Source of the DNA: Takakia lepidozioides
Lineage: Eukaryota > Plantae > Bryophyta
DNA: 64,000 bases
Assembly: GCA_030704615.1 (NCBI GenBank)
Contig: CM060731.1
Coordinates: forward strand, 82,894,001 to 82,958,000
Direction: 5' to 3'
Below are positions 1 through 51,498 of this stretch, piece after piece. How positions within the stretch are numbered: position 1 is the first letter of the stretch; every line of letters begins with the position of its first letter. The position numbers and the translations under genes were made by a program. A model generated the notes under the pieces. The model was not told where the DNA came from. It made no database searches and worked only from the letters and a program-made list of their open reading frames with translations.

Positions 1-29
1 CACTCTGCGTTGCTCAGCCATAGCCAAGC

Positions 30-975
30 TGATAATCCAGGTCAAGCAATTGAGATCCATTGCTTGCCCCAACACCTGACGACGTGATGCCTCAGAAAGA
101 GACGACATCGCCGTGGTACCAGTGGTAAAACCCATTGCCCGTTCACGCTCGTTAGCATTGGGCTCCACTAACTGCTGCAACTGAGCATCCCACAGGAGGC
201 CAGGTCCACTATCCCGGAAAGCATGCGATCCTGGGAAGCTGAGCAGTGTAGGTAATGTTGCTCGTGGTTGACCCACCCTGTTGAACACTGCCAAAGGCGA
301 ACGATCATCGTGTCTCACACGCTGAGACTGCCTCCTTGTGTCCAAAATGCTATCCACTGTGAGGTGTGTTGGGCGCTGCACCCCATCAAATGCACGCTTG
401 AGCAGTGCGGGTGGCATCAAGTTAGTCCACCATAGCCGTGGACGATGAGCCCGTGACCCCACTGCAGCTGCAACCAGCAACACTGTTGACCCAAGCCACG
501 ACCGGACTTGATGCACACTGGCCATCACCCTGGCCCAAGAATCGCCCATCAGTGGCACATTCTCCAAGATGTATGCTGGAGATACAGCTTGATGAAGCTA
601 CAAGTGGTGCAAAACCCGCACCATCTCCCAAAACAAACCCGACCTCGAGTCTCGCAATCCATTGTCATGCGGCTGATGAATGCTCTTGGCAGGGCCAACC
701 TGCCACTGCCAGATCAATGGAGCCAACCCGCTCCAAATCCTGCGCCCCCAGCAACGAAATGTCTGTTGGCAAGGCCTGCTGATATCCACGAACTGCAGAC
801 ACCGACAACAACTCAGGGTACTGCTGCACCAACTGAGCAACATGGTGAAGTGAAATGCGTCGTGTAGTCTCATCCCTCTCTACATACTAGTAACGCCGAA
901 CTCGTACATCTGCCTGTAACACAACAGCCAATCCGGTGTTGATCCCGCCAAACAAGTCCAGAAGACAAATGCCTT
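30..975 (-). pseudogene. DNMT3-like C5 cytosine methyltransferase domain of copy B (disrupted)
   Basis: ICLLDLFGGINTGL (motif I), DLVVAGWPCQ (IV), YILENV (VI), AHRPRLWWTNL (VIII), EPNANERERAMGF (IX) and RRQVLGQAMDL (X) are readable across frames. Stop codon at 887. Confidence 0.88.
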
Positions 976-3866
976 CATCCGGATACTGCCATACAATAGG
1001 TGTGGTGTCCAATGGAGACAACTGAGGTGGTCCTGGTGCAATCCCCGCACTCTCCTCCTCTCCTGATGGTACAAAAGCCTCCACCCAGGCTTGTTGCACC
1101 CGTCGATCAGCAACCCGCTGCAAATCTTTGCTCGTGCCCCACAATGGAGTCTGAGCAACCATGGCAGGCAACTCCGCCATACCATACATGTCATCCTGCT
1201 CTCCCGGAGGTGATACATCGTCTGAATGAGCGTTGCCCTCAAGCAACTCTCCAGGCCAACTCAATGCAACTGTGAATGCTGTTAGTGTCGGCATCTTGCC
1301 TCGCTGGGCAACCGCAACTCCTCCTATGAATGTCACAGGGAGCTGCACACGCCGGCTCTCCCCTGACTGCCATCCACGCCTATAGGAAGCTGACTTTTCC
1401 CAAAAATCCAGGGTGAAGCCCATGGGGTACAACACTGCCCTACCAACCAGGACATCATACGAGACCGCGTCTGTCACAATGGCCTTGGCTCGCATCACTG
1501 AGCCATCTGTAAGGTGATCCGGCCGTAGTCTGATAGCCAACTCATGCCATGTCATGCCCCAAGCCTGCTCCGATCCTCCCAGAGACGTCTGTATCTGGAA
1601 AGGACAAGGCTCCATATCCGCCTCCGTGAGGCCCAAGCCTGCAATAGCAGCTCTGCCCAGCATCAATGGCTGAGCTCCCGAGTCCAACAAGACCCGCAGT
1701 GGCCGGTACCTCTTGCCTGCCAGTCCACTCAAATAGAAAATGTCATTCTGGTTGTCTAACATGACAATTCCAGGTGTCACCAAGGCGCGCTCAATGGCTG
1801 GCCTAGCTGGCAGTTTCATCAACCTGGCAACTGCAGTTTGCCATTGCGCCGCCGTGGCAGTCTTGACCCTCAAATCCGAGGATCCATCCGGCACTACACC
1901 TCCCACTATCTCCGCAGAAGATGAAGTAACCTTCCCACTCTCACAGAGTGTAGCTGCCAGCCTGAACACCTCAGCTGGTCTTACCCCCGGCGTCGCAATC
2001 ATGGTAGCCGAGAACAATGGAGCCTGGCACACAGATGTGGCCGCTCCCAGCAGCACACTTGCTGCCGTAGCCTTGGCAACACTAGGTAGTGATGCTGCCC
2101 GTGTAGCTCTCCCCAATGGCATAGTAACCTCCGCCTCGGTAACAGTCGGGTGAGAACTAGGTGCCATGGATGGCGTCGATACTGTCTCCGCCAATGTGAA
2201 TGACTGAGGAAGCCTAGCCTAATGGCTTGCCTCCCAACGTTGTGGATCCAGCTCCACCTCTGCATCTCGTGGCTCAGAAACTCGTGCTGATCCTCGGGTC
2301 ACGGCTGCAGCAGACTCCACCTGCACTAGTGGTAGTGCTGCTCCGCACATGAATCCCATGCATCCCATATCTCCTCCCTCAGGAGCAGGAGGTGGACCAT
2401 CCGGCCTTGGAGCCGGTACCACCTGAGCTGTAGCCATGGCAGCGAGCCTCTGCTCTAGCTGCTGAAGTCGGTTGGTCATGCCTTGGTCAACACCCTGACC
2501 TCCGCGTCCTTGGCCATGTTGAGCTTGCCCTTGGCCTGCACCTCGTCCTCTTTGGGCTGCTCCACCTCGCCCCCGGCCACCATTGTTCCCTTGGAACTGG
2601 CCTGGGCGCAACTCAGGATGCAAACCATAACACTGGGCTTCTCCATGCCCGTACTTGCCACAATGCCCACACTGCAACTGTGAAAGCTGTGCCAGTGCCA
2701 AACCATTGCCTCCCTCTGGGCAATCCATCTTGACATGGGGTCTTCCAAATGTCCAACACACCACATCCGCCCGTTGTTGGCCAGCAAATGAAGGGAGAGA
2801 CCCCTGCATTTGAGGTCCTCTCTACCCTTCCCTGAGCTTCACCTGAGCCCCCTTGTTGCCTTGAGCACGTTGAGGTAGTGTTGGCTAGGAGCACCACTAC
2901 CCGTGGTGTCTCCTTAGCAAATCCCACCATGACCACTCGTTCCTCCACCATGTTGAGCTCTATCCGCTCTGCCAGCAAAAACACATTTGTTAAGGTGGGT
3001 TGGGCCGCTTGTAAGAGAGTTGCATCCCGCACCCTTCTCTCCTTGTCCAATATCCCATACCAGAATTGGACTGCCTGAGCTTCCGTAATCCCTTAGGTTA
3101 CATTTATCAAGCACCTCTTGCGAGTGAAAGCCTCCCTCAAGCTCTCAGTCGGCTTCCATTGGAACTCTTGCAAGCTCCGCAACTTCTCTGTCCTCACCCC
3201 TTGGTAGTTCTCTCTTAAGTCTTCGAAGAACTCCAAGAAAACAGGGTTGAAGGCAAGCACGGGTACTGGTGCGGGTGCGGTATTGGCTTGGGTTTACGTT
3301 GTAGCTACGGTACCACCAGTCCCACTAGTCCCACTGCTGCTTACTGAAACTGCCGGTGTAGCGGCAGGTGTAGCCACTGCCATCGTGGCTCTAGTGCCCC
3401 TAGTGATGGAGACATAGTCGGGTGACCAGTACATCCTCCACTCCTCGATCTCAACCTCATGCCCCCGCCTGAACTCATGGTAATCATCCGTAGGCGGCCC
3501 CTCAAAGTGCTGAAATAGCCCCTTCTATGCCATGAAAGGCGTAAATAATTGTGGATTGCGCATTTGCTGCAAATCACACCAACTATCAAACTCTTGGATA
3601 AAATCATCCAACTCGATGGTGCCCACCGCCCTAGAGTACCTTCGTGGCCCCTTGGTAGCTCCATACATCTCCTCCATTGTGTCCCACAACAATGGTAAGG
3701 AAACAACTTGCACCGCCGGTGTGAGTCCTCCTGATTCACAATCTGAATCAGAACCTTCCATAGAAGACACAGGAGGTGAAGGTGGCCTAAACCGCACACC
3801 TCGGCTCGTGTATCCACTAGTATCGCTAGTGCTCAAACCGGCACTGTCCCCAGCAACTAGTGGCAC
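976..3866 (-). pseudogene. gag and aspartic protease of copy B (disrupted)
   Basis: ORFs 3525-3866, 2613-3050, 2219-2809 and 887-2194. Zinc knuckle CGHCGKYGHGEAQC; protease motif VLLDSGAQ. Confidence 0.88.
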
Positions 3867-4599
3867 CTCCGTGTTGACAAACTGTCACTCAACGGGTCAT
3901 GAACATGTCCCTAACCCCCTCTCTACAAGGTAACTGGGTAGAGAACCTGTTGCGGCTTATGGTTTGGAATATTAGGTTCCTAACATAGCCTACATCTGCA
4001 CCTGCATCCACCGCAAGCACTCCTATGGTTGGCTGGTCATCACCTCCAACCTCACCATGGGAGAAACAATAATGGTCTGACTGGTCATCACCCCAGCCTC
4101 ACCATCGACAACATGCTCTAGGACTAGCCGGTGATCAAATCCGGACCAATCACCTATAAAAACAAGCGCCCACACAAAACTAACATGGCGCACAGTCAAG
4201 CATGCAGGTATGGAGGGGATCCAAACACAAGAAATCAGAACGACAACTCCCCCACACCAAAAACAACTCCACAGTGTTGCTCCTGCAAGGACACCCCAGC
4301 CCAAACCCGGACTGACTCTTGCCTCCACCTACGGAAAGGTCTTGGCCTAATGAGAGGGTGGAAAACTACGAGGAAGAGAAGCTAAAGCAATGCCTAACCC
4401 CAGCATGCCCTCATCCCAACACTCTTCCTCTCCTCTCTTCTCTCACTTGCATGACCATGGAAATATCATGAAGATATTCCTCAAACCGCCCTCCACGAGC
4501 TTCGAAATTTGGCCTTCAAGACCACATGCCAGTCCTCAAGTAGTCCACCAGTGCCTCCCCGAGTCAGCACATGCCGTCCATAGGTCAACATGCACCACA

Positions 4600-5130
4600 G
4601 ACCAGCACAGGCCCACATAGCCCCATAGGCCATAGGTCACAGCCTGTCACAGCCCGTCACAACCCCAAAGGCCACATGGCACAGCCTGTCACAGCCCTAT
4701 GTACACAGGTCCCAGGGGTCACAGTCCCGAAGGCCACAGCCCATCACAGCCTGTCACAGCCCGTCACAGCCCCACAGGCCACAGGGCACAACCTGTCATA
4801 GCCCGCCACAGCCCATCACAACCACTCACAGCCCGTCACAGCCAAAGGCCACAGGCACAGCTTGTCACAGCCCTACACAGGTCACAGGGGTCACAGCCCC
4901 AAAGGCCACAGCCTGTCACAGCCCGTCACAGCCCGTCACAGCCCCACAGGCCACAGGGCACAGCCTGTCACAACCCCTCACAGCCCATCACAGCCCCTCA
5001 CAGCCCGCCACATCCCATCACAGCCTGTCATAGCCCCTCACGGCCCCACAGGCCACAGACCACAGCCTGTCATAGCCCATCACAGCCCATCACAGCCCCA
5101 CAGGCCACAGGGCACAACTTGTCACAGCCC
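4600..5130. repeat. TCACAGCCY-based (about 9-nt unit) minisatellite in the copy B leader, about 0.5 kb
   Basis: Tandem tcacagccc/tcacagcct units interspersed with aggcca/gggcac spacers. Confidence 0.95.
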
Positions 5131-6593
5131 CATCCATGGCCATTCATGGCAGTTTAGCCATTTCTCCAAGGCGTTTAGCCACGCCAAACTAGGGTTTGTG
5201 TCTCTTGGACTCTAGGCTTCTTTGCACCGAGCTATGGCGGCTGTGAGGAAATCAGCAAGGTATTCTTGCTCTTTATGGCTCCCACGCACCACCAATAGTA
5301 GCTCTAATTCCAAAGGAAGATATTTGCAACCAAAACTAAGTGTACAAGCTTCCTTTTAACTCCCAAAACAGCGCCATTGATCCCTATGGCGACAAGTACA
5401 AGCCTTCAATAGGCTGAAAGCATGCTCCACACATGCATTGCCCTCACATAAGGGAAGTCAGCCCTTCCCTCTTCCTTGCTTGCCCTCCTAGCTTGAAGAT
5501 GGAAGCTTCAATGAGCTGAATACATGCTCCACACATGCAACCTCTTCACACAAGAGGTATCAGCCCCCTATCTTGGCTCCTTGGCTCCTTGGCTCCTTGA
5601 TGCTCTCTAAGACAAGACTAAGCACTCCACAGCCTTTGCCAAGCTCCTGAAACCCTAAGGCTTACATTTCCAACCACAAGACACTCCTCTTGTGGTGCAA
5701 GAGCTCTTCTTCCAAGCTCTGAAACCCTAGGTGCACATTCCATGGCCTTGCCGCACCTCTTAGCTCCTGTTCCAGCCCTGCTCTTGCCATGACAAGAGCC
5801 CTCTCAATGCTGAAGCTCGAGATTGAAACCCAATCTCACCATACTCCACAAAGTGCACTGATTTGCCCCAAGCCAAATCAACCCTTTCGCTTGGTCTTGC
5901 AGTCCTTCACACAATGAAAGCTCGCATTCCCAAGTCCAGTTCTCAGCTTTGCCACCAAAGCCACTATAACCTGCTCTTGACTGGTCCTCTTCCCAATCGT
6001 GCTTGCTCATGCTTGTACACAATCTGAAACCATCAAGGTGCTCTGGAATTACCTGCAGCATGGTGCTTTCATCTGTGAAACTGAAGATCGAATGCCAAGG
6101 TCTACTACCTCGTAACCCACATCGCCTCCGCTTCTACAACCAAGAGCTCCACGGTGCTCCTTGCATAACAACCTGGTTTCTTTCATTCTCAAGCAAAAAC
6201 CACAAGTGCTACAACTAACTCGTATCTGGCACTCACAGATACGAGCTCATCTTTCTCAAGTGATAAAGAAGAAGAATACAAGCACAAGCTCATGCGAGCT
6301 CACAAAGCTGAAGCATAAACTCATGCATATATAACCTCATCACTCAAATACAAGTCAAGCCAAGTGCACCCCACGCCATGGGGAATCCACACTACGGCGC
6401 CATAGCTAGGCGCGGTGAGGCTCAACTCGAGAAAGATGAGCCTCTCGCGTTTGCCGTGAAGATAACCACTCCAGGGCCTAAATCTGCCTTGACCCCTGGA
6501 TTGACACTTGGGCCAATCCCAAATGTCAATATGTAAACGCTAGCTATTTCCTAGCTAGTTTCACACTAGTGGTAAAATAACTTGACATTCATC

Positions 6594-8232: not shown

Positions 8233-8680
8233 TGTCGTGCGCATACATATCGCTACACAACTACATCGCTGTCCAAAACCACACAACACATGTGCACACC
8301 ACACACTAGTATACCACTAGTCTACCACTAGTCTAGCCACTAGTCCAACCACTAGGCTACAACTAGTCAGTCACTAGGCTGCCACTACGCTGCCCACTAT
8401 GGCAGTCACTAGTTCACACAATCGCCCCCCTAGCTGGTGCTTAGGTCCCTCTAAGTCCAGGTAGCCACAAGATGTGATAGTGACCATAGCCTCACTAAGT
8501 CCTCCACCACTATCCCTACTACACTCAAACTCGATAGATCAAGAGGCCGGGTGCAAGAGTTGCCCCATCGTTAGTCGTCGTCTTGCAACCTGTGAACTTG
8601 AGCTTGGGATCTCATGTATTGACTCCTATGAGCTTGGCCTCCCATGTCTTGTTAGCTGCCTCCAGTCATGTCCACTGCCA

Positions 8681-10228
8681 CTATCCCAAGCAGTGTGGAC
8701 ACAACCAATCTCCGTCAGGAACCTTCTCAAGAGGTGGTGTCAAGCATCCCATATGCCAACCCCTTGAGCATCGATCACACACCAGCATGGTGGCTGCCCC
8801 TTTGGCAGACCCACAGAGCATGCACCTCAAACCTGCAGGTACCACTGCCAAGTTTGGGTCAACTCTGCCATCGACATTGGGAAGGTGACATGGCGCACAA
8901 TTACGCACATGGTCCTTCCAAGTCATGCCATCCCGACCCTCCAAGATCAGGACCCCTGAGGGCAACACCTCTCGAACCCTCAGAATAACACGCCCTGCAG
9001 TAACATCCAGAGTCGTAGGAGCAGTCTGCTGCAAATAAACATAGTCACCAGGGCTAAACCTCCGAACCCCAGGACGATATCCTCCACCACGTATAGTGGC
9101 ATACCTCAACGTATCACGGTGCTGTGCAATGGCAAGGTTCTCAAAAGCCATGGGCATGACTTTCTTGAACAACTCTGCACGCTGATCACATGCACGTACC
9201 CACACGTCCGGATCGTCAAGGTTAAGGACTTGAGCAGTGTCCCTACGAATGGCTGCAGGCAAATCCGGCTCTCGGCCAAAGAGAAGGAAATATGGTGAGA
9301 AGGAGGCAAGTGATGCTTGTTTGCTGAACCTGTAGCCCATGGCTAACCAAGGAACCTGAAGATCCCAATCTCCTAGGTGTCCCTTCTGCAAGCCATACTT
9401 GCGCAAACCCCTCTTCACCGTCTGAACAACTCTCTCTGCTAAGCCATCGGCCTCAGGATGATCCCGAGAAGTGGTGCGGTGGTCGATCAAGGCTTTATCA
9501 CACAAAGCCTGAAACTCCCCCAAGAACTCTCTCCCTTGGTCCGTGAGTACCTCAGCTGGAGCACCAAATCGGCTAAGCACACGATCCAAGAATGCATACG
9601 CAGCCCCCTCACTAGCCTTGTCAGGCAATGGAACCAACTCAATCCACTTGGAGAAGTGCTCCACCATCACCAACACATATCTGTGGTGGCGCATAGTCAG
9701 TGGCAACGGTCCTGCGAAGTCAAGACTCCACCTGTAGCCCAATCCCATGATAGGTAAAGGATGCAACTGTGGTGTAGGGGCGTTGAATGAAGCACGCACC
9801 CTGTCACACACCATGCACCTAGCCACAAACTGTTGCACCTCTGTATGCATACCACGCCACCAATACTGCCCCTGCAGTAAACTGTGAGTGCGTCGCACTC
9901 CAAAATGCCCCAACTCCTCATGGGCATGCCGCACTAACCGTGCACGCTGTGTGGGGTGAGGCACAATCCTCACCCGACCACCCTCCCACACTCGAAGTAG
10001 GTGTATCCCCTCCCACTTGAACCTCTTGGCTCGTTGCAGGATCCGATCCCTCTCCCTGGCAGTCACAATGGCTGCCGTGTCTCCCGTGCGGAGGTAGTCC
10101 AACACAGCCGAATCCTCATGTATATCTCTGGCACCACCTAGCTCATCACTAGCCTCAGGGTCCTCAGACACTCCGTCTACAGTCATCCCTGTTGTAGGTC
10201 CAATCTGACCTCCCGATGCCAAGAACAA
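8681..10228 (-). CDS. Integrase (HHCC + DDE core) with C-terminal PHD finger; C-terminal part of the polyprotein, open frame
   Basis: HAHEELGHFG...CMVC; SLDFAG, LTDQG, GLAERV; terminal CMLC..CDRC..WHMGC..WLCPHC (C4HC3). Confidence 0.95.
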   Translation of the reverse strand: MFLASGGQIGPTTGMTVDGVSEDPEASDELGGARDIHEDSAVLDYLRTGDTAAIVTARERDRILQRAKRFKWEGIHLLRVWEGGRVRIVPHPTQRARLVRHAHEELGHFGVRRTHSLLQGQYWWRGMHTEVQQFVARCMVCDRVRASFNAPTPQLHPLPIMGLGYRWSLDFAGPLPLTMRHHRYVLVMVEHFSKWIELVPLPDKASEGAAYAFLDRVLSRFGAPAEVLTDQGREFLGEFQALCDKALIDHRTTSRDHPEADGLAERVVQTVKRGLRKYGLQKGHLGDWDLQVPWLAMGYRFSKQASLASFSPYFLLFGREPDLPAAIRRDTAQVLNLDDPDVWVRACDQRAELFKKVMPMAFENLAIAQHRDTLRYATIRGGGYRPGVRRFSPGDYVYLQQTAPTTLDVTAGRVILRVREVLPSGVLILEGRDGMTWKDHVRNCAPCHLPNVDGRVDPNLAVVPAGLRCMLCGSAKGAATMLVCDRCSRGWHMGCLTPPLEKVPDGDWLCPHCLG

Positions 10229-10289
10229 AAAATGCAGATGCGTGCCATCCCCGGCACCATCTCCTCGTCCGTCTCACACCATGCCAACC

Positions 10290-11730
10290 GAGCTCCAGTG
10301 TCATCCTGCTGGCTCATGCATGGATTGCGACTCAATCCATCCCCATCCCGATTGACCCAAACCGGTCGATGCACAACCTGAAAGTCATACTCCTGGAGTA
10401 TAAGTGCCCACCGTGCAAGCTTCCCGTAAGCTTGTCTGACTCCATCAACCACCTTGAGTGGCTGGTGATCCGTGACAGGGTGAAAAGATTGCCGTTATAG
10501 ATAGCACCTGAAGTGTACCACGGCCACACTGCCAGCTAAGCACTCTCCCTCATATGAGCTGTACTTAGCCTCTGCAGCGTTGTTTGAGCGGCTAGCGTAA
10601 GCCACTACGAACTCTCTTCCCTCATCATCCACCTGTGTGAGGCACCGCTCCAAGCCCCAGCATGCTCCAATCCGTAGGCAGTCTGAAAGGGACGCCCCAT
10701 GATAGGTCGTCTCAAGATAGGCGCCGAGGTCAACCTCGACTTGAGCTCTTGCAAAGCTCGTTCCTGTGTCATCTTCCCACTGCCACTCTGGTCACCTTGG
10801 TCAGCTTGGTTAGAGCCTTTGCAATGTTACTAATCCCTGACAAAACCGTAATAATAGTTTGCCCAACCAATGAAAGCTCGAACTCGCTCACATCCGTGGG
10901 GCGTGGAATTTGTGCAATGGCCTCTACCTTAGTCTGCTGTACCCCCAACCTCCAGGATATATCATGTGACCCAGATACTCAATCTGGTTGTGGAAAAACT
11001 TGCACTTCCCCGGATGCAACTTCAATCCGTGCGCTCTCAAGCGCTCCAATACCACCTGAAGGTGTCTCTCATGCTCCTCCATCGTAACACTAAAAGATGA
11101 TGATGTCATCTATGTAGCACCGAGCAAAGTCCACCCCTGCTAGAATCCTATCCATGACTCTCTGAAAACTCTGCAGGAGCATTCTTAAGCCAAATGGTAA
11201 GAACCGCCACTGATATAGGCAATCCTTGCCGTGCTCATGATCCCCCAGAATGCGTCTTCTGCTTGTCCGCCTCCTGATGGCAAATGGTGATATCCGGATC
11301 GTAATCCAAAGTGCTAAAGGCCTTAGCATGCCCGATGGCATCAAAGATCTCCTCTGGTGTTGGCATGGCATACTTATCGGACTTGTCTGACGATTTACAG
11401 GCCGGTAATCACCGCACATACGTCTCTCCGTCCAATTGCCATAGACATCCTTCTTGGCTGGCATCACTGTGGCTGAAGCATACTCTCCACCAGAGAGCTC
11501 CACCAAACCTGCCTCCCAGAGATCTTGAGTCCTCATCTGAATCAAAGACCTCTCCATGTCACTGTATCTATAGGGTCTCCGAAAGATTGGCGTGTCAGTG
11601 GCCAACTCAATACGGATCTCTTGACCCTTCAGTGCTCCCAAGTCCTTCAAACTGAAGGCAAAGCAATTCCTGTAAGCCTCAGGAACCGCGTATACGTCGT
11701 CTCTCTCCTCCGGTGACAATGGGTCCAATG
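10290..11730 (-). pseudogene. Reverse transcriptase and RNase H of copy A (many 1-nt indels)
   Basis: RMCGDYRPVN, LPFGL, FQRVMD, CYIDDIIIF, KCKFF, IEYLGH; RNase H TDWS..LGAV, AYASR, KLARWALILQEYDF. Confidence 0.93.
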
Positions 11731-12099
11731 TCAGGCTCCCAATTGTCCTCCGTAACTACAACCTTAAGTCCAGTGGGATTAGAGGTAGAGGACGCGTCCC
11801 GTGGTTGCTATGCTGCACCTCTTGAGCAGTACTTCCACCTGCTCAGTCAATGACAGGCATCATCCTGCCCATCATCTCATCCTTGAGGACCTCCTCAACC
11901 GAGAAGAATCCCCAACCTCATCCATCACAGCCGCCTTGGCTGCCAACTCCCTCTGAACCTCGAGCACCTCCCACGTGTGCCATGGATGCATGCACCCCGT
12001 GGTCCTCATATGCTCGCCCCCCTCACTGCCTGTACCGTCTCGGTAGGCAGAGAGACCATTGAGGGAAGTGTATTCCGCACTCTGCGTTGCTCAGCATAG

Positions 12100-13055
12100 A
12101 GCCAAGCTGATAATCCAGGTCAAGCAATTGAGATCCATTGCTTGCCCCAACACTTGACGACGTGATGCCTCAGAAAGACGACACCGCCGTGGTACCAGTG
12201 GAAAAACCATTGCCCGCTCGCTCGTCAGCATTAGGCTCCACTAACTGCTGCAACTGAGCATCCCACAGGAGGCCAGGTCCACTATCCCGGAAAGCATGCG
12301 ATCCTGGGAAGCTGAGCAGTGTAGGTAATGCTGCTCGTGGTTGACCCACCTTGTTGACCACTGCCAAAGGCGAACGGTCATCGTGTCTCACACGTGAGAC
12401 TGCCTCCCTGTGTCCAGAATGTTATCCACTGTGAGATGTGCTGGCCGCTGCACCCCATCAAATGCACGCTTGAGCAGTGCGGGTGGCATCATGTTAGTCC
12501 ACCATAGCCGTGGACGATGAGCCCGTGACCCCACTGTAGCTGCATCTAGCAACACTGCTGACCCAAGCCACGACGGACTGATGACACACTGGCCATCACC
12601 CTGGCCCGAGAATCGCCCATCAGTGGCACATTCTCCAAGATGTATGCTGGAGATACAGCTTGATGAAGCTGCAAGTGGCGCAAAACCCGCACCATCTCCC
12701 AAAACAGACCCGACCTCGAGTCTCGCAATCCATTGCCATGCCCGGCTGATGAATGCCCTTGGCAGGGCCAACCTGCCACTACCAGATCAATGGAGCCAAC
12801 CCGCTCCAAATCCTGCGCCCCCAGCAACGAAATGTCTGCTGGCAAGGCCTGCTGATATCCACGAATTGCAGACACCGACAACAACTCAGGGTACCGCTGC
12901 ACCAACTGAGCAACATGGCGAAGTGAAACGCGTCGTGCAGTCTCATCCCTCTCCACATACAGGTAACGCCGAACTCGTACACCTGCCTGTAACACAGCAG
13001 CCAATCCGGTGCTGATCCCGCCAACAAGTCAGTCCAGAAGACAAATGCCTTCATC
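12100..13055 (-). pseudogene. DNMT3-like C5 DNA methyltransferase domain embedded in pol of copy A (frameshifted)
   Basis: Non-permuted motifs: ICLLD-LFGGISTGLAAVL (I), RYLYVE (II), DLVVAGWPCQGHS (IV, catalytic PC), GLFWEMVRVL (V), YILENV (VI), GSRAHRPRLWWTN (VIII), EPNADER..MGF (IX), RRQVLGQAMDL (X). A 4-nt duplication near 13030 and other small indels break the frame. Confidence 0.92.
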
Positions 13056-13399
13056 CGGAGACTGCCACACAATAGGTGTGGTGTCCAATGGAGACAATTG
13101 AGGTGGTCCTGGTGCAATCCCCACACTCTCCTCCTCTCCTGACGGTACAAAAGCCTCCACCCAGGCTTGTTGCACCCGTCGATCAGCATCCGCTGCAAAT
13201 CCTTGCTCGTGCCCCACAATGGAGTCTGAGCAACCATGGTAGGCAACTCCGCCATACCATACATGTCATCCTGCTCTCCCGGAGGTGGTACATCCTCTGA
13301 ATGAGCATTGCCCTCAAGCAACTCTCTAGGCCAACTCACTGCCGCTGTGAATGCTGCTAGTGTCGGCATCTTGCCTCGCTGGGCAACCGCAACTCCTCC

Positions 13400-13830
13400 T
13401 ATGAACGTCACAGGGAGCTGCACACGCCGGCCCTCCCCTGACTGCCATGCAGGCCTATAGGAAGCTGACTCCTCCCAAAAATCCAGGGTGAAGCCCATGG
13501 GGTACAACACTGCCCCACCAACCAGGACATCGTATGAGACTGCGTCTGTCACAATGGCCTTGGCTCGCATCACTGAGCCATCTGTAGGGTGATCCGGCCG
13601 TAGTCTGATAGCCAACTCATGCCGTGTCATGCCCCGAGCCTGCTCCGATCCTCCCAGAGACGTCTGTATCTGGAAAGGACAAGGCTCCATATCCGCCTCC
13701 GTGAGGCCCAAGCCTGCAATAGCAGCTCTGCCCAGCATCAGTGGCTGAGCTCCCGAGTCCAACAAGACTCGCAGTGGCCGGTACCTCTTGCCTGCCGGTC
13801 CACTCAAACAGAAAATGCCATCCTGGTTGT
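13400..13830 (-). CDS. Retropepsin-type aspartic protease domain of copy A (within ORF 12779-14875)
   Basis: RVLLDSGAQPLML and YDVLVGGAVL motifs. Confidence 0.88.
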
Positions 13831-14561
13831 CTAACATGACAACTCCAGGTGTCACCATGGCGCGCTCAATGGCTGGCCTAGCTGGCAGCTCCATCAACCT
13901 GGCAGCTGCAGCTTGCCATGGCGCCGCCGTGGCAGTCTTGACCCTCAAATCCGAGGATCCCTCCGGCACTACACCTCCCACTATCTCCGCAGAAGATGAA
14001 GTAACCTCCCCACTCTCACAGAGTGTAGCTGCCAGCCTGAACACCTCAGCTGGTCTTACCCCCGGCGTCGCAATCATGGTAGCCGAGAACAATGGAGCCT
14101 GGCACACAGATGTGGCCGCTCCTAGCAGCACACTAGCTGCCGTAGCCTTGGCAACACTAGGTAGTGGTGCTACCCGTGTAGCTCTCCCCAATGGCATAGT
14201 GACCTCCGCCTCGGTAACAGTCGGGCGAGAACTAGGTGCCATGGATGGCGTCGACACTGTCTCCGCCAATGTGAATGACTGAGGAAGCCTAGCCTGACGG
14301 CTTGCCTCCCCACGCTGTGGATCCAACTCCACCTCTGCACCTCGTGGCTCAGGAACTCGTGCTGCTCCTCGAGTCACGGCTGCAGCAGACTCCACCTGCA
14401 CTAGTGGTAGTGCTGCTCCACACATGAATCCCATGCCTCCCATATCTCCTCCCTCAGGAGCAGGAGGTGGACCATCCGGCCTTAGAGCCGGTACCACCTG
14501 AGCTGTAGCCATGGCAGCGAGCCTCTGCTCTAGCTGCTGAAGCCGGTTGGCCATGCCTTGG

Positions 14562-15968
14562 TCAACACCCTGACCTCCGCGTCCTTGGCCACGTTGAGCT
14601 TGCCCTTGGCCTGCACCTGTGGCTGGCCACCTCGTCCCCTCTGGGCTGCTCCACCTCGCCCCGGCCACCATTGTTCCCTTGGAACTGGCCTGGGCGCAAC
14701 TCAGGATGCAAACCATAACACTGAGCCTCTCCATGCCCGTGTTTGCCACAATGCCCACACTGTAACTGTGCAGGCTGTGCATGTGCCGGCCCTTTGCCTC
14801 CCTCTGGACAATCCTTCTTGACATGGGGTCCTCCACATGTCCAGCACACCACATCCGCCCGTTGTTGGCCAGCAAATGAAGGGAGAGACCCCTGCATCTG
14901 AGGTCCTCTCTGCCCTTCCCTGAGCTTCACCTGAGCCCCCTTGTTGCCTTGAGCACGTTGAGGTAGTGGTTGGCTAGGAGCACCACTACCCCGTGGTGTC
15001 TCCTTAGCAAATCCCACCATGACCACTCGTTCCTCCACCATGTTGAGCTCTATCCGCTCTGCCAGCAAAAACACATTTGCTAAGGTGGGTTGGGCCGCTT
15101 GTAGGAGAGTTGCATCCCGCACCCTTCTCCTCAGCTCCTTGTCCAATATCCCATACCAGAATTGGACTGCCTGAGCTTCCGTAACCCCTTGGGTTACATT
15201 TATCAAGCGCCTCATGCGAGTGAAAGCCTCCCTCAAGCTCTCGGTCGGCTTCCGTTGGAACTCTTGCAAGCTCCGCAACTTCTCTGTCCTCACCCCTTGG
15301 TAGTTCCCTCTCAACTCTTCGAAGAACTCCACAACAGGGTTGAAGGCAGGCACGGGTGCTAGTGCTGGTGCGGTAGTGGCTTGGGTGGACGTCGTAGCTA
15401 CTGTACCACCAGTCCCACTGCTGCTTGCTGAAGCTGCCGGTGCAGCGGCAGGTGTAGCCACTGCCCTCGTGGCTCTAGTGCCCCTAGTGATGGAGACATA
15501 GTCGGGTGACCAGTACATCCTCCACTCCTCGATCTCAACCTCATGCCCCCGCCTGAACTCATGGTAATCATCCATAGGCGGCCCCTCAAGGTGCTGAAAC
15601 AGCCCTTTCCATGCCATGAACGGCGTAAATAGTTGTGGATTGCGCATTTGCTGCAAATCACACCAACTATCAAACTCTTGGATAAAATCATCCAACTCAA
15701 TGGTGCCCACCGCCCCAGAGTACCTTCGTGGCCCCTTGGTAGCTCCATACATCTCCTCCATTGTGTCCCACAACAATGGCAAAGAAACAACTTGCACCGC
15801 CGGTATGAGTCCTCCCGATTCACAATCCGAATCAGAACCTTCCGTAGAAGACACAGGAGGTGAAGGTGGCCTAAACCGCACACCTCGTCTCGTGTACCCA
15901 CTAGTATCGCTAGTGCTCGAACCGGCACTGTCCCCAGCAACTAGTGGCACCTCCGTGTTGACACTCAA
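14562..15968 (-). CDS. Gag of copy A with two zinc knuckles and an RGG/Gln-rich tail; frameshift near 14630 relative to pol
   Basis: FQRKPTESLREAFTRM (major-homology-like), CWTCGGPHVKKDC and CGHCGKHGHGEAQC. True start codon uncertain. Confidence 0.88.
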   Translation of the reverse strand: MSVNTEVPLVAGDSAGSSTSDTSGYTRRGVRFRPPSPPVSSTEGSDSDCESGGLIPAVQVVSLPLLWDTMEEMYGATKGPRRYSGAVGTIELDDFIQEFDSWCDLQQMRNPQLFTPFMAWKGLFQHLEGPPMDDYHEFRRGHEVEIEEWRMYWSPDYVSITRGTRATRAVATPAAAPAASASSSGTGGTVATTSTQATTAPALAPVPAFNPVVEFFEELRGNYQGVRTEKLRSLQEFQRKPTESLREAFTRMRRLINVTQGVTEAQAVQFWYGILDKELRRRVRDATLLQAAQPTLANVFLLAERIELNMVEERVVMVGFAKETPRGSGAPSQPLPQRAQGNKGAQVKLREGQRGPQMQGSLPSFAGQQRADVVCWTCGGPHVKKDCPEGGKGPAHAQPAQLQCGHCGKHGHGEAQCYGLHPELRPGQFQGNNGGRGEVEQPRGDEVASHRCRPRASSTWPRTRRSGC

Positions 15969-16689
15969 CCGGTCATGAACATGTCCCTAACCCCCTCTTC
16001 ACAAGGTAACCGGGTAGAGAACCTGTTGCGGCTTATGGTTTGGAATATTAAGTTCCTAACATAGCCTACACCTGTACCTGCATCCACCACAAGCACTCCT
16101 ATGGTTGGCTGGTCATCACCTCCAACCTCACCACAGGAGAAACAATGATGGTCTGGCTGGTCATCACCCCAGCCTCACCATCGACAGCATGCTCTAGGAC
16201 TGGCCGGTGATCAAATCCGGACCAATCACCTATAAAACAAGCGCCCACACAAAACTAGCATGGCGCACAATCAAGCATGCAGGTATGGAGGGGATCCAAA
16301 CACAAGAAATCAGATCGACAACTCCCCCACACCAAAAACAACTCCACGGTGTTGCTCCTGCAAGGACACCCCAGCCCAAACCCGGACTGACTCTTGCCTC
16401 CACCTACGGAAAGGTCTTGGCCTAATGAGAGGGTGGAAACTACGAGGAAGAGAAGCTAAAGCAATGCCTAACCCCAGCATGCTCTCATCCCAACACTCTG
16501 CCTCTCCTCTCTATCCTCACTTGCATGACCATGGGAATATCATGAAGATACTCCTCAAACCGCCCTCCACGAGCTTCAAAATTCGGCCTTCCAGACCACA
16601 TGCCAGTCCTTAGGCAGTCCACCAGTGCCTCCACGAGTCAGCACAGGCCGTCCACAGGTCAACACGGGCCACCACAGACCAGCACAGGC

Positions 16690-18290
16690 CCACACAGCTC
16701 ACTGGTCAGGCCGTCACAGTCCCACAGGCCACTGGGCACAGCCTGTCGCAGCCCCTCACAGCCTGTCACAGCCTCAAAGGCCTCAGGCACGGCCTGTCAC
16801 AGCCCCTCACAGCCCCTCACAGCCTCAAAGGCCTCAGGCACGGCCTGTCACAGCCCCTCACAGCCCGTCACAGCCCATCACAGCCTGTCACAGCTTGCCA
16901 CAGCCCATCACAGCCCGTCACAGCCTCAAAGGCCTAGGGCACGGCCTGTCACAGCCCCTCACAGCCCCTCACAGCCTCAAAGGCCTCAGGCACGGCCTGT
17001 CACAGCCCCTCACAGCCCGTCACAGCCCCAAAGGCCATGGGCACGGCCTGTCACAGCCCCTCACAGCCCGTCACAGCCCCAAAGGCCATGGGCACGGCCT
17101 GTCACAGCCCCTCACAGCCCGTCACAGCCTCAAAGGCCTCAGGCACGGCCTGTCACAGCCCTCACAGCCCGTCACAGCCCCAAAGGCCATGGGCACAGCC
17201 TGTCACAGCTCGCCACAGCCTGTCACAGCCCATCACAGCCCCATAGGCCTCAGGGCACAGCCTGTCACAGCCCCGCACAGCCCGTCACAGCCCCAAAGGC
17301 CACTGGGCACAGCCTGTCACAGCCTGACACAGCCCGTCACAGCCCCACAGGGCACAGGGCACAGCCTGTCACAGCCCATCACAACCCATCACAGCCGGTC
17401 ACAGCTTGCCACAGCCTGTCACAGCCCGTCACAGCCCCACAGGCCACAGGGCACAGCCCGTCACAGCCCGTCACAGCTCGCCACAGCCTGACACAGCCCG
17501 TCACAGCCCCACAGGGCACAGGGCACAGCCTGTCACAGCCCCTCACAGCCCGTCACAGCCCCAAAGGCCTCAGGCATGGCCTGTCACAGCCCCAAAGGCC
17601 ACTGGGCACAGCCTGTCACAGCCTGACACAGCCCGTCACAGCCCCACAGGGCACAGGGCACAGCCTGTCACAGCTTGCCACAGCCTGTCACAGCCCGTCA
17701 CAGCCCCACAGGCCACTGGGCACAGCCTGTCACAGCCCGTCACAGCCCCAAAGGCCATGGGCACAGCCTGTCACAGCCCGTCACAGCCCCACAGGCCTCA
17801 GGGCACAGCCTGTCACAGCCCCGCACAGCCCGTCACAGCTCGCCACAGCCTGACACAGCCCGTCACAGCCCCACAGGGCACAGGGCACAGCCTGTCACAG
17901 CCCCTCACAGCCCGTCACAGCCCCAAAGGCCTCAGGCACAGCCTGTCACAGCCCGTCACAGCCCCAAAGGCCACTGGGCACAGCCTGTCACAGCCTGACA
18001 CAGCCCGTCACATCCCCACAGGGCACAGGGCACAGCCTGTCACAGCCCATCACAGCCCATCACAGCCTGTCACAGCCCGTCACAGCCCCACAGGCCACTG
18101 GGCACAGCCTGTCACAGCCCGTCACAGCCCCACAGGCCTCAGGGCACAGCCTGTCACAGCCCCGCACAGCCCGTCACAGCCCCAAAGGCCACTGGGCACA
18201 ACCTGTCACAGCCTGACACAGCCCATCACAGCCTGTCACAGCTTGCCACAGCCCGTCACAGCTTGCCACAGCCTGTCACAGCCCCACACA
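16690..18290. repeat. TCACAGCCY-based minisatellite in the copy A leader, about 1.6 kb with higher-order units
   Basis: Continuous tandem array; about three times longer than the equivalent array in copy B. Confidence 0.97.
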
Positions 18291-21200
18291 TGGCCGCTCT
18301 GGCAGTTTAGCCATTTCTCCAAGGGGTTTAGCCACGCCAAGCTAGGGTTTGTGTCTCTTGGACTCTAGGCTTCTTTCCACCGAGCTATGGTGGCTGTGAG
18401 GAAATCAGCAAGGTATCCTTGCTCTTTCGGCTCCCACACACCACCATAGTAGCCCTAAGCCATGAGGTGGTTGCCACAAACCAAGCCTTCTTTCTCACTT
18501 AGCCTCCCCAAACACGCCACTAAACTCAATGGCAAACAACCAAGCCCTGCTGGTTCCCAGCCCTTGTGAGCACTCATTCAAGCACTCCCCTCATTGGCCA
18601 TAGCATCTGTCTTAGAGCCTATTCCAGCCCTCTACACCTGTTGCTTCAAGAGTTGCGCTCCCTTCAAGCTTGAAGTTAGGCCCTACAAGTGCTGTTCTTT
18701 CACTCCAAGTGGAAACCAGCCCTAGACCTTCCGTTCTAGCTCTCTAAGGCTTGAAAACAAGAGCCTCAATGGGCTGAAGGCATGCTCCACACATGCCCCA
18801 CTCTCACCATAAGAGAATCAGCTCCTTTGCTTCATTTCTTGCACCCACAAACCTGATAATACAAGCTTCAGCAGGCTGAAAGCATGCTCTACATGCCCTA
18901 CAGGGAAACCAGCCCCTTCCTTCCTTTCTTGCACTCCCACACCTAAAAGTGCAAGCCTTCACCAGGCTGATAGCATGCTCCACACATACATTGCCCTCAC
19001 ATAAGGGAAGTCAGCCCTTCCCTCTTCCTTGCTTGCCCTCCAAGCTTGAAGATGGAAGCTTCAATGAGCTGAATACATGCTCCACACATGCAACCTCTTC
19101 ACACAAGAGATATCAGCCCCCTATCTTGGCTCCTTGGCTCCTTGATGCTCTCTAAGACAAGACTAAGCACTCCACAGCCCTTGCCAAGCTCCTGAAACCC
19201 TAAGGCTTACATTTCCAGCCACAAGACACTTCTCTTGTGGTGCAAGAGCTCTTCTTCCAAGCTCTGAAACCCTAGGTGCACATTCCATGGCCTTGCCGCA
19301 CCTCTTAGCTCCTGTTCCAGCCCTGCTCTTGCCATGACAAGAGCCCTCTCAATGCTGAAGCTCGAGATTGAAACCCAATCTCACCATACTCCAAAAAGTG
19401 CACTGATTTGCCCCAAGCCAAATCAGCCCTTTCGCTTGGTCTTGCAATCCTTCACACAATGACAGCTCGCATTCCCAAGTCCAGTTCTCAGCTTTGCCAC
19501 CAAAGCCACTATAACCTGCTCTTGACTGGTCCTCTTCCCAATCGTGCTTGCTCATGCATGTACACAATCTGAAACCATCAAGGTGCTCTGGAATTACCTA
19601 CAGTATGGTGCTTTCATCTCTGAAGCTGAAGATCGAATGCCAAGGTTTACCACCTCGTAACCCACATCGCCTCCGCTTCTAACAACCAAGAGCTCCACGG
19701 TGCTCCTTGCATAACAACTTGGTTTCTCTCATTCTCAAGCAAAAACCACAAGTGCTACAACTAACTCGTATCTAGCACTCATAGATACGAGCTCATCTTT
19801 CTCGAGTGATAAAGAAGAAGAATACAAGCACAAGCTCATGCGAGCTCACAAAGCTGAAGTATAAACTCATGCATATATAACCTCATCACTCAAATACAAG
19901 TCAAGCCAAGTGCACCCCACGCCATGGGGAATCCACACTACGGCGCCATAGCTAGGCGCGGTGAGGCTCAACTCGAGAAAGATGAGCCTCCCGCGCTTGC
20001 CGTGAAGATAACCACTCCAGGGCCTAAATCTGCTTTGACCCCTGGATTGACACTTGGGCCAATCCCAAATGTCAATATGTAAAAGCTAGCTATTTCCTAG
20101 CTAGTTTCACACTAGTGGTAAAATAACTTGACAAATCTTTCAAATTGAACTTGATGCCATCATATGCGCAAACATGACACATAAATACATCGTGATGGTG
20201 CAACTTGCTTCCGCGGTTTTTTGAGTGAACTCTTATCTCCGCCGTGTTAAGTTTTGCGTTACGTGTGTCTATCTCATCGTGCGAGTTGTGAAATCTTAAG
20301 AGTTGTAGGTTGCCGCTGTCAAATTGAGCTATCATTACCAACAAACAAAAATTTGGAAAGCAAACATCAATTGTGAGACTGGCCATGTTGGCTGAAGCTG
20401 GAGTCTTGTCTACCCTGACCTCTCCTTGGTTCAAAATGTTAGTCTTCCCAAGTGAATATAGTTTTGGCCAAACTGACTTTGCGATTTAGTCATTGACTGC
20501 AGGAATAGCAATGGTGTGTGTTTGCTGGTGGACATACTCACATCACCAAGTGGGCTGAAAACCATACAGTACAGGTCTTTGGCTAATTCGTTTCTAGAAC
20601 TAGCCAGAATGAACTAGCAAAACAGTGGCTTCATATGTGTGAAGCAAGAACAGGTCGGACCTGTAACATCAAAAAGATCACCACTGGTGGAGTAATGCTT
20701 GCAACTGTAGTCTAGAGAGACCAGCTTTTGCAATGGTGTACACGAAGGTGCATATCCCTGACTCCCACCACCTAGTCGTGTGAGTTGCAAAGCATGTTAG
20801 CAGTGTTAGCATGTTAGCAATTTCCATGCTTTTTACAGCATGGTTCTTCCATATTCCAGTCTTCTCACTACAGAATCCAAGCTTATCATTTCAAGTACGA
20901 GAGGAGAAACAAAGAAATCATCGAAGGAGAGAGACAAATGCAAATGCCTTATCTACTACATTTCGGTGCACCCCTCCTCATATCACAGAAGTTCAATTTC
21001 TGTCAAGTAACAAAACAATGTCATCATCTCCTTTCTGGTTCTTCTTGGGACTAGACATACACATATGGCAACCAGAGATATGCGTTCCTTCTGTCATGCC
21101 TTCCACTTAAACCACTGGAAAGAATGAAGACACTTTTCCTGCGCTACACTAATATGCTACAGACCCAAGTCATTCCTAGCCTCTTCAAGGGTTCAGTTGT

Positions 21201-40800: not shown

Positions 40801-41313
40801 AAGCATGGCAGGAGGCATTTCCATTGGTGAGTGAGGGGAGTTCAGTGACATCACCTGGACCTCCTGAGTTAGCTCCTTTGGACACATTGCCCATTACCTG
40901 GCAACCACCTGACTCAGGGATTTGTTCGCTAGACCTGTTTGGAAGCATAAGCACTGGGCTTGCAGGAGTGTTGCAAGCAGGGATTAAAGTACACAAGTAC
41001 TTGTATGTGGAGAAGGATGAGATAGCTCGGCGTATTTCTATGCGCCACATCGCCTTGCTCACACACCGATATCCTAAGTTGTTGCCTCTCTCAGCAATTC
41101 AAGGGTATCAAAAGGCCTTGCCTGCAGACATTACCTTGCTGGGGGCGGATGATTTGGACCGGCATGGTGCCATTGACTTGGTGATAGCCGGATGGCCTTG
41201 CCAAGGACACTCTCCCGCATGTCATGGGAATGGCTTGCATGATGCACGATCGCATTTGTTTTGGGAGATGTTGCGAGTGTTGCGGGACTTGCAGACGAGG
41301 CAAATGCAACCTC
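37893..41313 (+). mobile_element. Copy C of the DNMT3-retroelement family (second subfamily): leader, gag mostly deleted, protease, MTase motifs I-V, 3' truncated
   Basis: Starts TGTCATGGTTTT like copy D. ORF 39690-40634 has VLLDSGAQ; ORF 40794-41321 has SLDLFGSISTGL and DLVIAGWPCQGHS. Homology to D ends at 41313. Confidence 0.9.
39075..39480. repeat. GGATGAA-anchored tandem array (about 19-nt subunits, about 76-nt higher-order unit) at the deletion junction in copy C
   Basis: About 20 GGATGAA(A/C) cores at 17-21 nt spacing; GGATGAAACTGCGCCAG recurs after 76 nt. Confidence 0.9.
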
Positions 41314-50400: not shown

Positions 50401-50634
50401 ACCTGATGAGGACAAACAATTGGCATATAAGGCTGATTTGCTTCTTCATGTGCCTGTTCTTATTCCACTGTGGGGTACAGTTGGGAATTTGCATCGAGTA
50501 GCAGACGAGTGTGTGCACCAAGCATGGCATGAGGTCTATCCATTGGTGAGTGAGGGGAATTCAGTGACATCACATGGACCTCCTCAGTTAGCTCCTTTGG
50601 ACACAGTGCCCATTACCTGGCAACCACCTGACTC

Positions 50635-51498
50635 AGGGATTTGTTTGCTAGACATGTTTGGAGGCATGAGCACTGGGCTTGCAGGAGTGTTGCAAGCAGG
50701 GATCAAAGTACGCAAGTACTTATATGTGGAGAAGGATGAGATTGCTCGGCGTGTTTCCATGCGCCATGTTGCCTTGCTCACACATCAGTATCCTGAGTTG
50801 TTGCCTCTCTCAGCAATTCAAGGGTACCAAAAGGCCTTTGCCTGCAGACATTACCATGCTGGGGGCGGAGGATTTGGATCGGCATGATCCCATTGACTTG
50901 GTGATAGGAGGGTGGCCTTGCCAAGGACATTCTCCCGCAGGTCATGGTAATGGTTTGTAAGATGCACAATCGCATCTGTTTTGGGAGATGTTGCGAGTGT
51001 TGCGTGACTTGCAGGTGAGGCAAGTGCAACCTCCAACTTACATCCTGGAGAATGTTCCTCTCATGGGGGATTCTCAAACCAGGGTTATGGCCAGTGTACA
51101 TCAGATCCGGTCATGGATTGGACCAGCTGTATTGTTGGAAGCAGCTGCAGTGGGTTCACGGGCACATAGGCCTAGGTTGTGGTGGACCAAACTTGTACCA
51201 CCAGAGTTGCTCAAGAGAGCCTATGATTCCATTCAACGGCCACCCAATCTCACGGTTGAGGGCATTTTGGACCAAGGGAGGTAACCACAGAGGGTGCGAC
51301 ATGATGACCGTCCACCTCTAGCAGTGGTAAATCGAGTGGGGCAGCCACGTGCAGCCTTGCCTATGCTCATGAGCTTTCCCTCGTCTCATGCTTTTCAAGA
51401 CAATGGTCCTGGGTTGATTTGGGACAGTGTGTTACAACAATTGGTGGAGCCCAATGCGGATGAGCGAGAGCGGGCAATGGGATTTGCCACGGGCACTA
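50635..51498 (+). pseudogene. DNMT3-like methyltransferase domain of copy D (disrupted, lacks motif X)
   Basis: ICLLDMFGGMSTGL, DLVIGGWPCQGHS, YILENV, GSRAHRPRLWWT, EPNADERERAMGF. Confidence 0.9.

Follow-up and report, generated by a model that had tools for sequence, protein, structure and literature searches.

A DNMT3-type cytosine methyltransferase in decayed copies of a bryophyte Ty3/gypsy retrotransposon lineage, encoded ahead of a putative leaky stop codon

Introduction

In the charophyte alga Klebsormidium nitens, the Gypsy-type retrotransposon KnitGypsy-Dnmt3 carries an intronless DNMT3-related domain (de Mendoza et al. 2018, PMC5890265). The same study described SymbioDIRS-Dnmt3 of Symbiodinium, which brought about de novo CG methylation in yeast and in which two domain orders coexist (PMC5890265). 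A 2025 paper, which cites the 2018 work, and a 2026 preprint mention DNMT3 borne by transposable elements in 'streptophytes', and the land-plant entries in the accessible part of the 2018 survey table include Physcomitrella and Selaginella and no liverwort or Sphagnum (PMC5890265). Here we describe a 64-kb stretch of DNA from Takakia lepidozioides (assembly GCA_030704615.1, contig CM060731.1, positions 82,894,001 to 82,958,000 of the forward strand), hereafter called the window, which holds four copies of a Ty3/gypsy retrotransposon with a DNMT3-type C5 cytosine methyltransferase domain. An earlier sequence-only reading of the window had proposed that this domain is unpermuted and lies between the protease and the reverse transcriptase (RT) of the element, and it had named Klebsormidium as the precedent, with no report known from embryophytes. 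In the searchable full-text literature we likewise found no land-plant Gypsy-DNMT3, the sole description being that of KnitGypsy-Dnmt3 in Klebsormidium (PMC5890265).

Results

Searches of the window with tblastn and blastn located four copies of the element, designated A to D, of which copy B is a complete insertion bounded on both sides by the 4-bp target duplication GATT (20137-20134 and 8232-8229). The minus-strand frames and a Pfam scan of copy B gave the order gag, protease, C5 methyltransferase, RT, RNase H, integrase and PHD finger. Copy B thus shows the gag, aspartic protease and RT-RNaseH-integrase (DDE) arrangement of Ty3/gypsy elements, with the methyltransferase placed between protease and RT. 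The features of copy B and the extents of the other three copies are as follows.

8233..20133, minus strand: copy B, complete insertion of 11,901 bp with ends TGTC...GACA
18300..20133, minus strand: 5′ terminal region (A-type end), 96-99% identical to copy A 5147-6587
16700..18290, minus strand: tandem-repeat array of ~1.6 kb with ~51-bp and ~10-bp units, between the 5′ end region and gag
14565..15986, minus strand: gag, weak Retrotrans_gag match, CCHC knuckle at 14846-14808
13300..13900, minus strand: aspartic protease, LLDSGA at 13765-13748
12094..13060, minus strand: DNMT3-like C5 methyltransferase domain of ~320 aa, in pieces in three frames
11808..11810, minus strand: conserved in-frame UAG followed by CAA CCA at the methyltransferase/RT boundary, a putative type-I leaky-stop context
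10927..11755, minus strand: RT, frameshifted, YIDD at 11116-11105
10186..10791, minus strand: RNase H region
8852..10273, minus strand: integrase with H2C2 zinc domain and rve core (Pfam)
8684..8830, minus strand: PHD finger at the C-terminus of the integrase (Pfam, E 1.8e-10)
8233..8433, minus strand: polypurine tract (8433-8422) followed by the B-type 3′ terminal repeat
1-6587, minus strand: copy A, with the 5′ end TGTC at 6587, running off the start of the window
39482-41313, plus strand: copy C, a fragment with protease and methyltransferase motifs I-IV (40869-41312), then cut off
47622-51497, plus strand: copy D, with gag, protease and a methyltransferase (50588-51497) that breaks off past motif IX

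Copy A lies 1.6 kb beyond copy B in the same orientation. The tandem-repeat array of copy B produces long spurious open reading frames (ORFs) on the plus strand, and its counterpart in copy A is smaller (4596-5130).

The four copies fall into two subfamilies, with A and B being 92% and C and D 90.7% identical, and the two pairs being ~73-75% identical to each other. According to the sequence-only reading, the domain occupies the same position and retains the catalytic Pro-Cys in four copies from these two subfamilies. Both observations stood: the methyltransferase starts ~270 nt past the protease in each of the four copies, and each has retained the W-P-C-Q codons (at 700 in A, 12773 in B, 41190 in C and 50910 in D). 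They have to be qualified in that the domain is a single open frame in none of the four copies, and in that a downstream RT is visible solely in copy B, because copy A leaves the window and copies C and D are truncated. No RT or integrase of the C/D subfamily is present within the window. The methyltransferase of copy A (~1-990) contains one stop and a 2-bp deletion and includes an uninterrupted 199-aa piece (597-1) that spans motifs VI-X, while that of copy B, with pieces at 13028-12549, ~12579-12394, 12388-12221 and 12177-12100 (minus strand), has a stop within motif I and several frameshifts. Copy C ends past motif IV/V (41313) and copy D past motif IX (51497). The gag, RT and RNase H regions of copy B are frameshifted as well, and their breakage is as severe as that of the methyltransferase. 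All four copies in the window are dead, as is evident from their stops, frameshifts and truncations.

The assignment of the domain to the C5 methyltransferases was confirmed by PF00145 (DNA_methylase), which matched the 160-aa piece at 13028-12549 (minus strand) with an E-value of 3.2e-13 and 50.3 bits against a cut-off of 22, and which also matched 25 of 30 family domains. The motifs of copy B follow each other in the unpermuted order, namely I (GGISTGL, 13022-13002), IV (GWPCQG, 12773-12756), VI (ILENV, 12641-12627), VIII (AHRPRLWW, 12522-12499), IX (~12230) and X (RRQVLGQAMD, 12162-12133), and across the window copies all of the catalytic motifs I (FxGxG), IV (PC), VI (ENV), VIII (RxR), IX and X were seen. 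When the window piece alone was compared with the sequences in the PDB, DNMT3A was the best match, albeit a weak one (E 1.6e-4). A family profile built from 30 diverse full-length methyltransferase domains (alignment A3) and searched against the same sequences matched DNMT3A with 88 bits (E 6e-24) and DNMT3B/C with 82-86 bits, as compared to 47-53 bits for DRM, 44 bits for M.HhaI and 33 bits for DNMT2; no match to DNMT1 or CMT was found among the PDB sequences. The alignment with DNMT3A was collinear across motifs I, IV-VIII and IX-X, whereas the part of the profile with motifs I-VI fell on the C-terminal end of DRM, as expected of a permuted enzyme. Furthermore, an AlphaFold model of the domain of one relative (pLDDT 96) was compared with the PDB by Foldseek, and the 44 best matches were all DNMT3A/B/C (TM 0.73/0.82). 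The catalytic Cys, the Glu-Asn of motif VI, both Arg residues of motif VIII (RxR) and the motif I Gly are invariant in all 30 family domains. In motif IV, the majority of the relatives in alignment A3 have Glu-Cys, while the bryophyte-type copies of the window have the canonical Pro-Cys. Judged by profile scores and predicted fold, the domain is closer to DNMT3 than to DRM, DNMT2, the bacterial enzymes or DNMT1/CMT. Together, PF00145, the family profile and Foldseek agree with the proposal of an unpermuted DNMT3-type enzyme between the protease and RT of a Ty3/gypsy element.

We determined dN/dS by the Nei-Gojobori method, with codons defined by the frames of the uninterrupted pieces. The N-half and C-half pieces of the methyltransferase were handled apart, as a joint MAFFT alignment overlaid the two halves. 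Between the subfamilies, dN/dS amounted to 0.13-0.17 for the N-half and 0.10-0.12 for the C-half of the methyltransferase, and to 0.18-0.21 for the protease plus linker; because dS is near saturation (1.3-1.8), these ratios are rough, but their direction is clear. Neutral evolution of the methyltransferase, for which a dN/dS near 1 had been named as the mark, is contradicted by its between-subfamily values of 0.10-0.17. The methyltransferase domain is under purifying selection. Copies A and B, when compared with each other, gave ratios of ~0.7-1.6 in all regions, as expected of decay after insertion.

Relatives of the methyltransferase were collected by an exhaustive HMMER search in which the 199-aa piece of copy A (597-1) served as the query. 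After clustering at 50% identity, 892 clusters scored E<=1e-3, and 468 scored E<=1e-10. The named relatives include the liverworts Calypogeia fissa, Marchantia polymorpha, Marchantia paleacea and Riccia sorocarpa, the moss Sphagnum troendelagicum, the zygnematophyte Closterium, and the chlorophytes Scenedesmus and Monoraphidium. None of the relatives found carries the name of Klebsormidium, the nearest named charophyte being Closterium, and the candidate Klebsormidium matches in NCBI/ENA were metagenome scaffolds with decayed copies. The loci of Sphagnum troendelagicum (L003) and Calypogeia fissa (L004) show the same order of gag, methyltransferase, RT, RNase H, integrase and PHD finger as the window, and both are decayed, L004 being frameshifted. 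The Marchantia locus L002 is a fragment, and Riccia likewise holds fragments; uninterrupted relatives were found as the metagenome contigs L009, L011, L001 and L010. In natural long ORFs of this family, the methyltransferase lies within the polyprotein frame of the element and is free of introns. In one DNA run of the host, 58,985 contig pieces were at least 90% alike over 5.9 kb, which shows that the family is very high-copy.

Among 461 fetched proteins, the methyltransferase precedes RT in 21, while in 90, the chlorophyte ones included, it is located between RNase H and integrase. These two layouts form the two sides of one branch in the methyltransferase tree (SH-aLRT 100), with every streptophyte name on the side of the window, and the window pieces fall into a clade with a support of 99 that contains bryophyte names only. 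The integrase tree showed the same split by layout (support 96.6). Since the splits in the two trees match, the enzyme has diverged together with the element. Either the methyltransferase changed its place in the polyprotein once, or two captures took place from very close sources. Between the window moss (8852-10273), Sphagnum (L003 12839-13798) and Calypogeia (L004 13596-14520), the integrase shows an identity of 80-84%, which exceeds the identity of 65-71% between mosses and liverworts in the nuclear cap-binding protein subunit 1 (CBP80). This may reflect either a very strong constraint or horizontal movement among bryophytes.

The PHD finger at the end of the integrase found its best PDB matches in CHD4, KDM5B/A (PHD1), PHF12, ATXR5, DPF3, PHF21A, AIRE and UHRF1. 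Most PHD fingers of this set bind the tail of histone H3 that is unmethylated at K4.

The sequence-only reading had placed the methyltransferase inside pol. Its position between protease and RT was borne out, but in the clade of the window the domain does not share an uninterrupted frame with the enzymes that follow it. Specifically, the metagenome contig L011 encodes a 1330-aa gag-protease-methyltransferase protein and a 1044-aa RT-RNaseH-integrase-PHD protein in the same frame with a single stop between them. The metagenome contig L009 carries two head-to-tail copies with the layout of L011. These two copies (L009 1-10888, JGI metagenome 3300081889) are near-identical, with ~2.2 kb from the PHD stop to the next gag start. 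Seven more protein clusters of ~1330 aa and the protein P0158 terminate at the same boundary, while the more distant kin P0152 (2327 aa) and P0406 are single ORFs without the stop. In plant viruses, UAG followed by CARYYA serves as the type-I readthrough signal (PMC5382211), and this consensus is fitted by TAG CAA CCA in copy B (11810-11808), by TAG CAA TCA in L009 and by TAG CAG TTA in L011. Sphagnum L003 and L006 have the near fit TAG CAA CCC, and two decayed copies are mutated at the stop site, which reads TAA CAA CCC in L005 and TAG TAA in L004. The context has thus been kept through the differing codons CAA CCA, CAA TCA and CAG TTA. We conclude that, in this clade, a first frame encodes gag, protease and, as its final domain, the methyltransferase and stops at a conserved UAG of the leaky type, beyond which lie RT, RNase H, integrase and PHD finger.

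Two matching long terminal repeats were not found in copy B, which has no terminal direct or inverted repeat. Its form can be described as A-internal-B, with a single B; copies A, C and D are incomplete. The ends of the Sphagnum and Calypogeia relatives have the form A..B-A-B, with the repeats located as follows.

L003, Sphagnum: A1 5742-6079; B1 14362-14476; A2 14478-14817; B2 14817-14931
L004, Calypogeia: A1 1861-2197; B1 16367-16468; A2 16467-16802; B2 16802-16903

In both loci the element ends are TGTC...GACA, the 4-bp target duplications being ATTC in L003 and AATG in L004, and a polypurine tract immediately precedes B1. Copy B has the same tract (8433-8422) directly ahead of its only B, and the final ~50 nt of this B are conserved in Sphagnum and Calypogeia as well. 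The junction of B with A is palindromic, reading GACA-GC-TGTC in L003 and GACA-AC-TGTC in L004. No repeats were found in L001, the metagenome contig that carries P0152, but this contig probably lacks the length to show them. Assuming B-A as the canonical repeat, a two-repeat circle that is cut at the B|A palindrome would give A..B-A-B, and a one-repeat circle cut at the same site would give A..B, the form of copy B; alternatively, A..B could arise by recombination between B1 and B2. The A..B ends are compatible with either route, and neither is favoured.

The host was placed by a neighbouring gene. The ORF at 24129-21499 (minus strand) encodes an uninterrupted, full-length CBP80 of 876 aa with the domains MIF4G, MIF4G_like and MIF4G_like_2; it is intronless and looks like an intact retrocopy. 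Its best relative overall is 80% identical. The best named relative is the moss Ceratodon with 71%, followed by liverworts with 65-67%, Ginkgo and a lycophyte with 62-63%, and flowering plants with ~55%. In the CBP80 tree, it formed a clade with Ceratodon (SH-aLRT 100) that is sister to the liverworts, branching outside the Ceratodon group. The host is therefore a moss, in line with the land-plant origin that had been proposed, and not a charophyte. A PPR-repeat ORF at 59039-59608 (minus strand) is probably part of a host gene. No tRNA genes and no Rfam families were found within the window.

Discussion

Taken as a whole, the most likely explanation, which we consider probable including its mechanism, is that the window holds four decayed members of two subfamilies within a bryophyte Ty3/gypsy lineage of very high copy number. 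As to the identity of this lineage, we are confident that its active members encode a DNMT3-type methyltransferase and an integrase with a PHD finger, and that they are the same kind of element as KnitGypsy-Dnmt3. This kinship is drawn from the published description rather than from Klebsormidium sequence. In the proposed mechanism, the main translation product would be Gag-protease-methyltransferase, and a minority of ribosomes reading through the UAG would add RT, RNase H, integrase and PHD finger. The leaky-stop layout thereby predicts the amount of the enzyme relative to RT and integrase: with the stop located between the methyltransferase and the integrase-PHD part, most methyltransferase molecules would be made without the latter. 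The methyltransferase would enter the virus-like particle in Gag-like amounts and be freed by the protease. There, it may modify the element's own new cDNA or the pre-integration complex, a step that we propose tentatively and that falls somewhat short of being probable. A new copy would then arrive already bearing host-like 5-methylcytosine (5mC). The PHD finger, belonging to a type that recognizes K4-unmethylated H3, would direct the integrase towards chromatin that lacks H3K4 methylation.

Several points weigh against this explanation. Since none of the four window copies is intact, there is no sign of current activity here. A 2.2-kb contig with ~94% identity, which covers the final part of the methyltransferase together with RT and RNase H, comes from a run that is marked as RNA by guess only and is no evidence of transcription. 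The observed/expected ratio of CpG is 0.45 in the element and 0.42 in the whole window, and as the depletion of the element equals that of its surroundings, it is uninformative on self-methylation. The label 'DNMT3-type' reflects profile scores and fold rather than phylogeny, the tree containing no Klebsormidium or host DNMT3, and readthrough at the UAG is suggested by its sequence context. We know of no Gypsy-borne DNMT3 for which enzymatic activity has been demonstrated. Lastly, the Klebsormidium domain did not methylate DNA in yeast, a result that its authors regarded as inconclusive because human DNMT3B failed in the same assay (PMC5890265).

A different role for the enzyme would be to act during or after integration, depositing 5mC either in the host sequence next to the insertion or in the newly inserted copy, for self-limitation of expression or site marking. 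In favour of this idea, a DNMT3-like writer and a PHD reader of the CHD4/KDM5/BHC80/AIRE/UHRF1 type occur together in every full-length relative, and in the chlorophyte-type relatives the methyltransferase directly precedes the integrase. In the clade of the window, however, a stop codon parts the methyltransferase from the integrase-PHD module, and most of the enzyme would be made without it. Gag-like amounts of methyltransferase would fit better with action in the particle than with action at the integrase, and we consider a role at integration unlikely.

The domain might also have ceased to methylate DNA and be kept for RNA methylation or for nucleic-acid binding in the particle. The negative yeast result for KnitGypsy-Dnmt3 could be read in this way, as could the Glu that replaces Pro before the catalytic Cys in most relatives. 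In addition, as the C-terminal part of the Gag-protease product, the methyltransferase would reach the abundance of a structural protein. Yet the catalytic Cys, the Glu of ENV, both Arg residues of RxR and the motif I Gly have remained invariant in 30 diverse members, the fold is best matched by DNA-bound DNMT3 structures, and the yeast assay also failed for human DNMT3B (PMC5890265), so that we regard a loss of DNA methylation as improbable. That the domain is carried along neutrally or adjoins the element by chance, as with a decaying host DNMT3 fragment or a host gene beside transposon pieces, could be suspected from its breakage in all four window copies, but we give this virtually no weight in view of the between-subfamily dN/dS, the same position in four copies and in other genera, the presence of the domain within single long natural ORFs, the 468 clusters of relatives, and the gag, RT and RNase H regions that are broken as badly in the same copies.

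Returning to the proposal of a particle-borne methyltransferase, a more far-reaching view can be formulated, although we regard it as rather doubtful in its entirety. In this speculative scheme, one ancient lineage of DDE-integrase Gypsy elements, extending from chlorophytes to mosses and liverworts, would rely on an epigenetic writer (DNMT3) and an epigenetic reader (PHD) in its life cycle. The bryophyte methyltransferase, made in Gag-like amounts by means of a leaky UAG, would pre-methylate its own cDNA, and integration at the palindrome within the repeat would produce A..B-A-B or A..B ends.

Plants silence transposons mainly by cytosine methylation, and it is therefore a paradox that a transposon family should keep its own de novo methyltransferase under selection. 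If the speculative scheme is true, a retrotransposon would write plant-type 5mC on itself ahead of its host, which could be tested in Marchantia or a moss. Such elements were studied before in one alga only, where the assay failed. As mosses and liverworts hold the family in abundance, among them Marchantia and Sphagnum with their good genetics, and as uninterrupted relatives are at hand, both the target and the beneficiary of the enzyme become testable in land plants. The two domain positions in sister lineages mark the methyltransferase as a movable but indispensable module. Family sequences are already present, unremarked, in public bryophyte annotations, and annotators should be aware that many bryophyte gene models named 'DNA (cytosine-5)-methyltransferase' or 'hypothetical' are fragments of such elements and not host genes.

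Among the known methyltransferases, the host DNMT3 enzymes (animal DNMT3A/B/C and plant DNMT3) provide the best profile and fold matches with collinear motifs I-X. However, the identity is only ~20%, the target-recognition region of the element's domain (between motifs VIII and IX) is ~30 residues longer, and the element's domain lacks PWWP and ADD and is encoded within a retrotransposon polyprotein. Plant DRM, with its DNMT3-derived catalytic domain, came second in the profile search, but DRM is circularly permuted and the domain of the element is not. The PHD finger recalls the chromoviruses, in which a histone reader is likewise fused to the C-terminus of the integrase; the reader is a chromodomain there, whereas here it is a PHD finger accompanied by a DNA methyltransferase. 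The stop codon is reminiscent of the type-I leaky stop of tobamoviruses and of the gag-UAG-pol readthrough of gammaretroviruses, where an in-frame UAG also separates an abundant upstream product from the polymerase. In contrast to these, the UAG of the moss element comes after protease and methyltransferase and not after gag or the replicase core.

Among the retrotransposons, the chlorophyte-type relatives (the 'pol' of Scenedesmus sp. PABB004 and MNEG_11595 of Monoraphidium neglectum) share the integrase-PHD module and a Gypsy RT/RNase H with the moss family, and theirs is the most closely related methyltransferase clade. They differ in that their methyltransferase lies between RNase H and integrase instead of between protease and RT, and they are set apart by one strongly supported branch in both trees. 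SymbioDIRS-Dnmt3 resembles the moss family in its retrotransposon-borne DNMT3-type domain and has A-coding-B-A-B repeats, but it is a tyrosine recombinase DIRS element and not a DDE-integrase Gypsy, and the acquisition of its domain was judged to be independent (PMC5890265). KnitGypsy-Dnmt3 and the moss family share an unpermuted DNMT3-related domain within the polyprotein, with the key residues kept and Ka/Ks <0.2. Furthermore, the repeats of KnitGypsy-Dnmt3 are arranged as A-coding-B-A-B (legend of Fig. 4 in PMC5890265), as in the Sphagnum and Calypogeia relatives. Whereas the host of KnitGypsy-Dnmt3 is a charophyte, for which few copies were stressed (PMC5890265), the present family has moss and liverwort kin and a very high copy number, and its PHD finger and putative leaky stop are mentioned nowhere in the text of PMC5890265 (0 occurrences of PHD). 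The present findings thus extend a published kind of element to the land plants and add to its description the leaky-stop layout, the alternative position that the domain takes in chlorophyte relatives, and the A..B-A-B ends that the Sphagnum and Calypogeia relatives have in common with KnitGypsy-Dnmt3.

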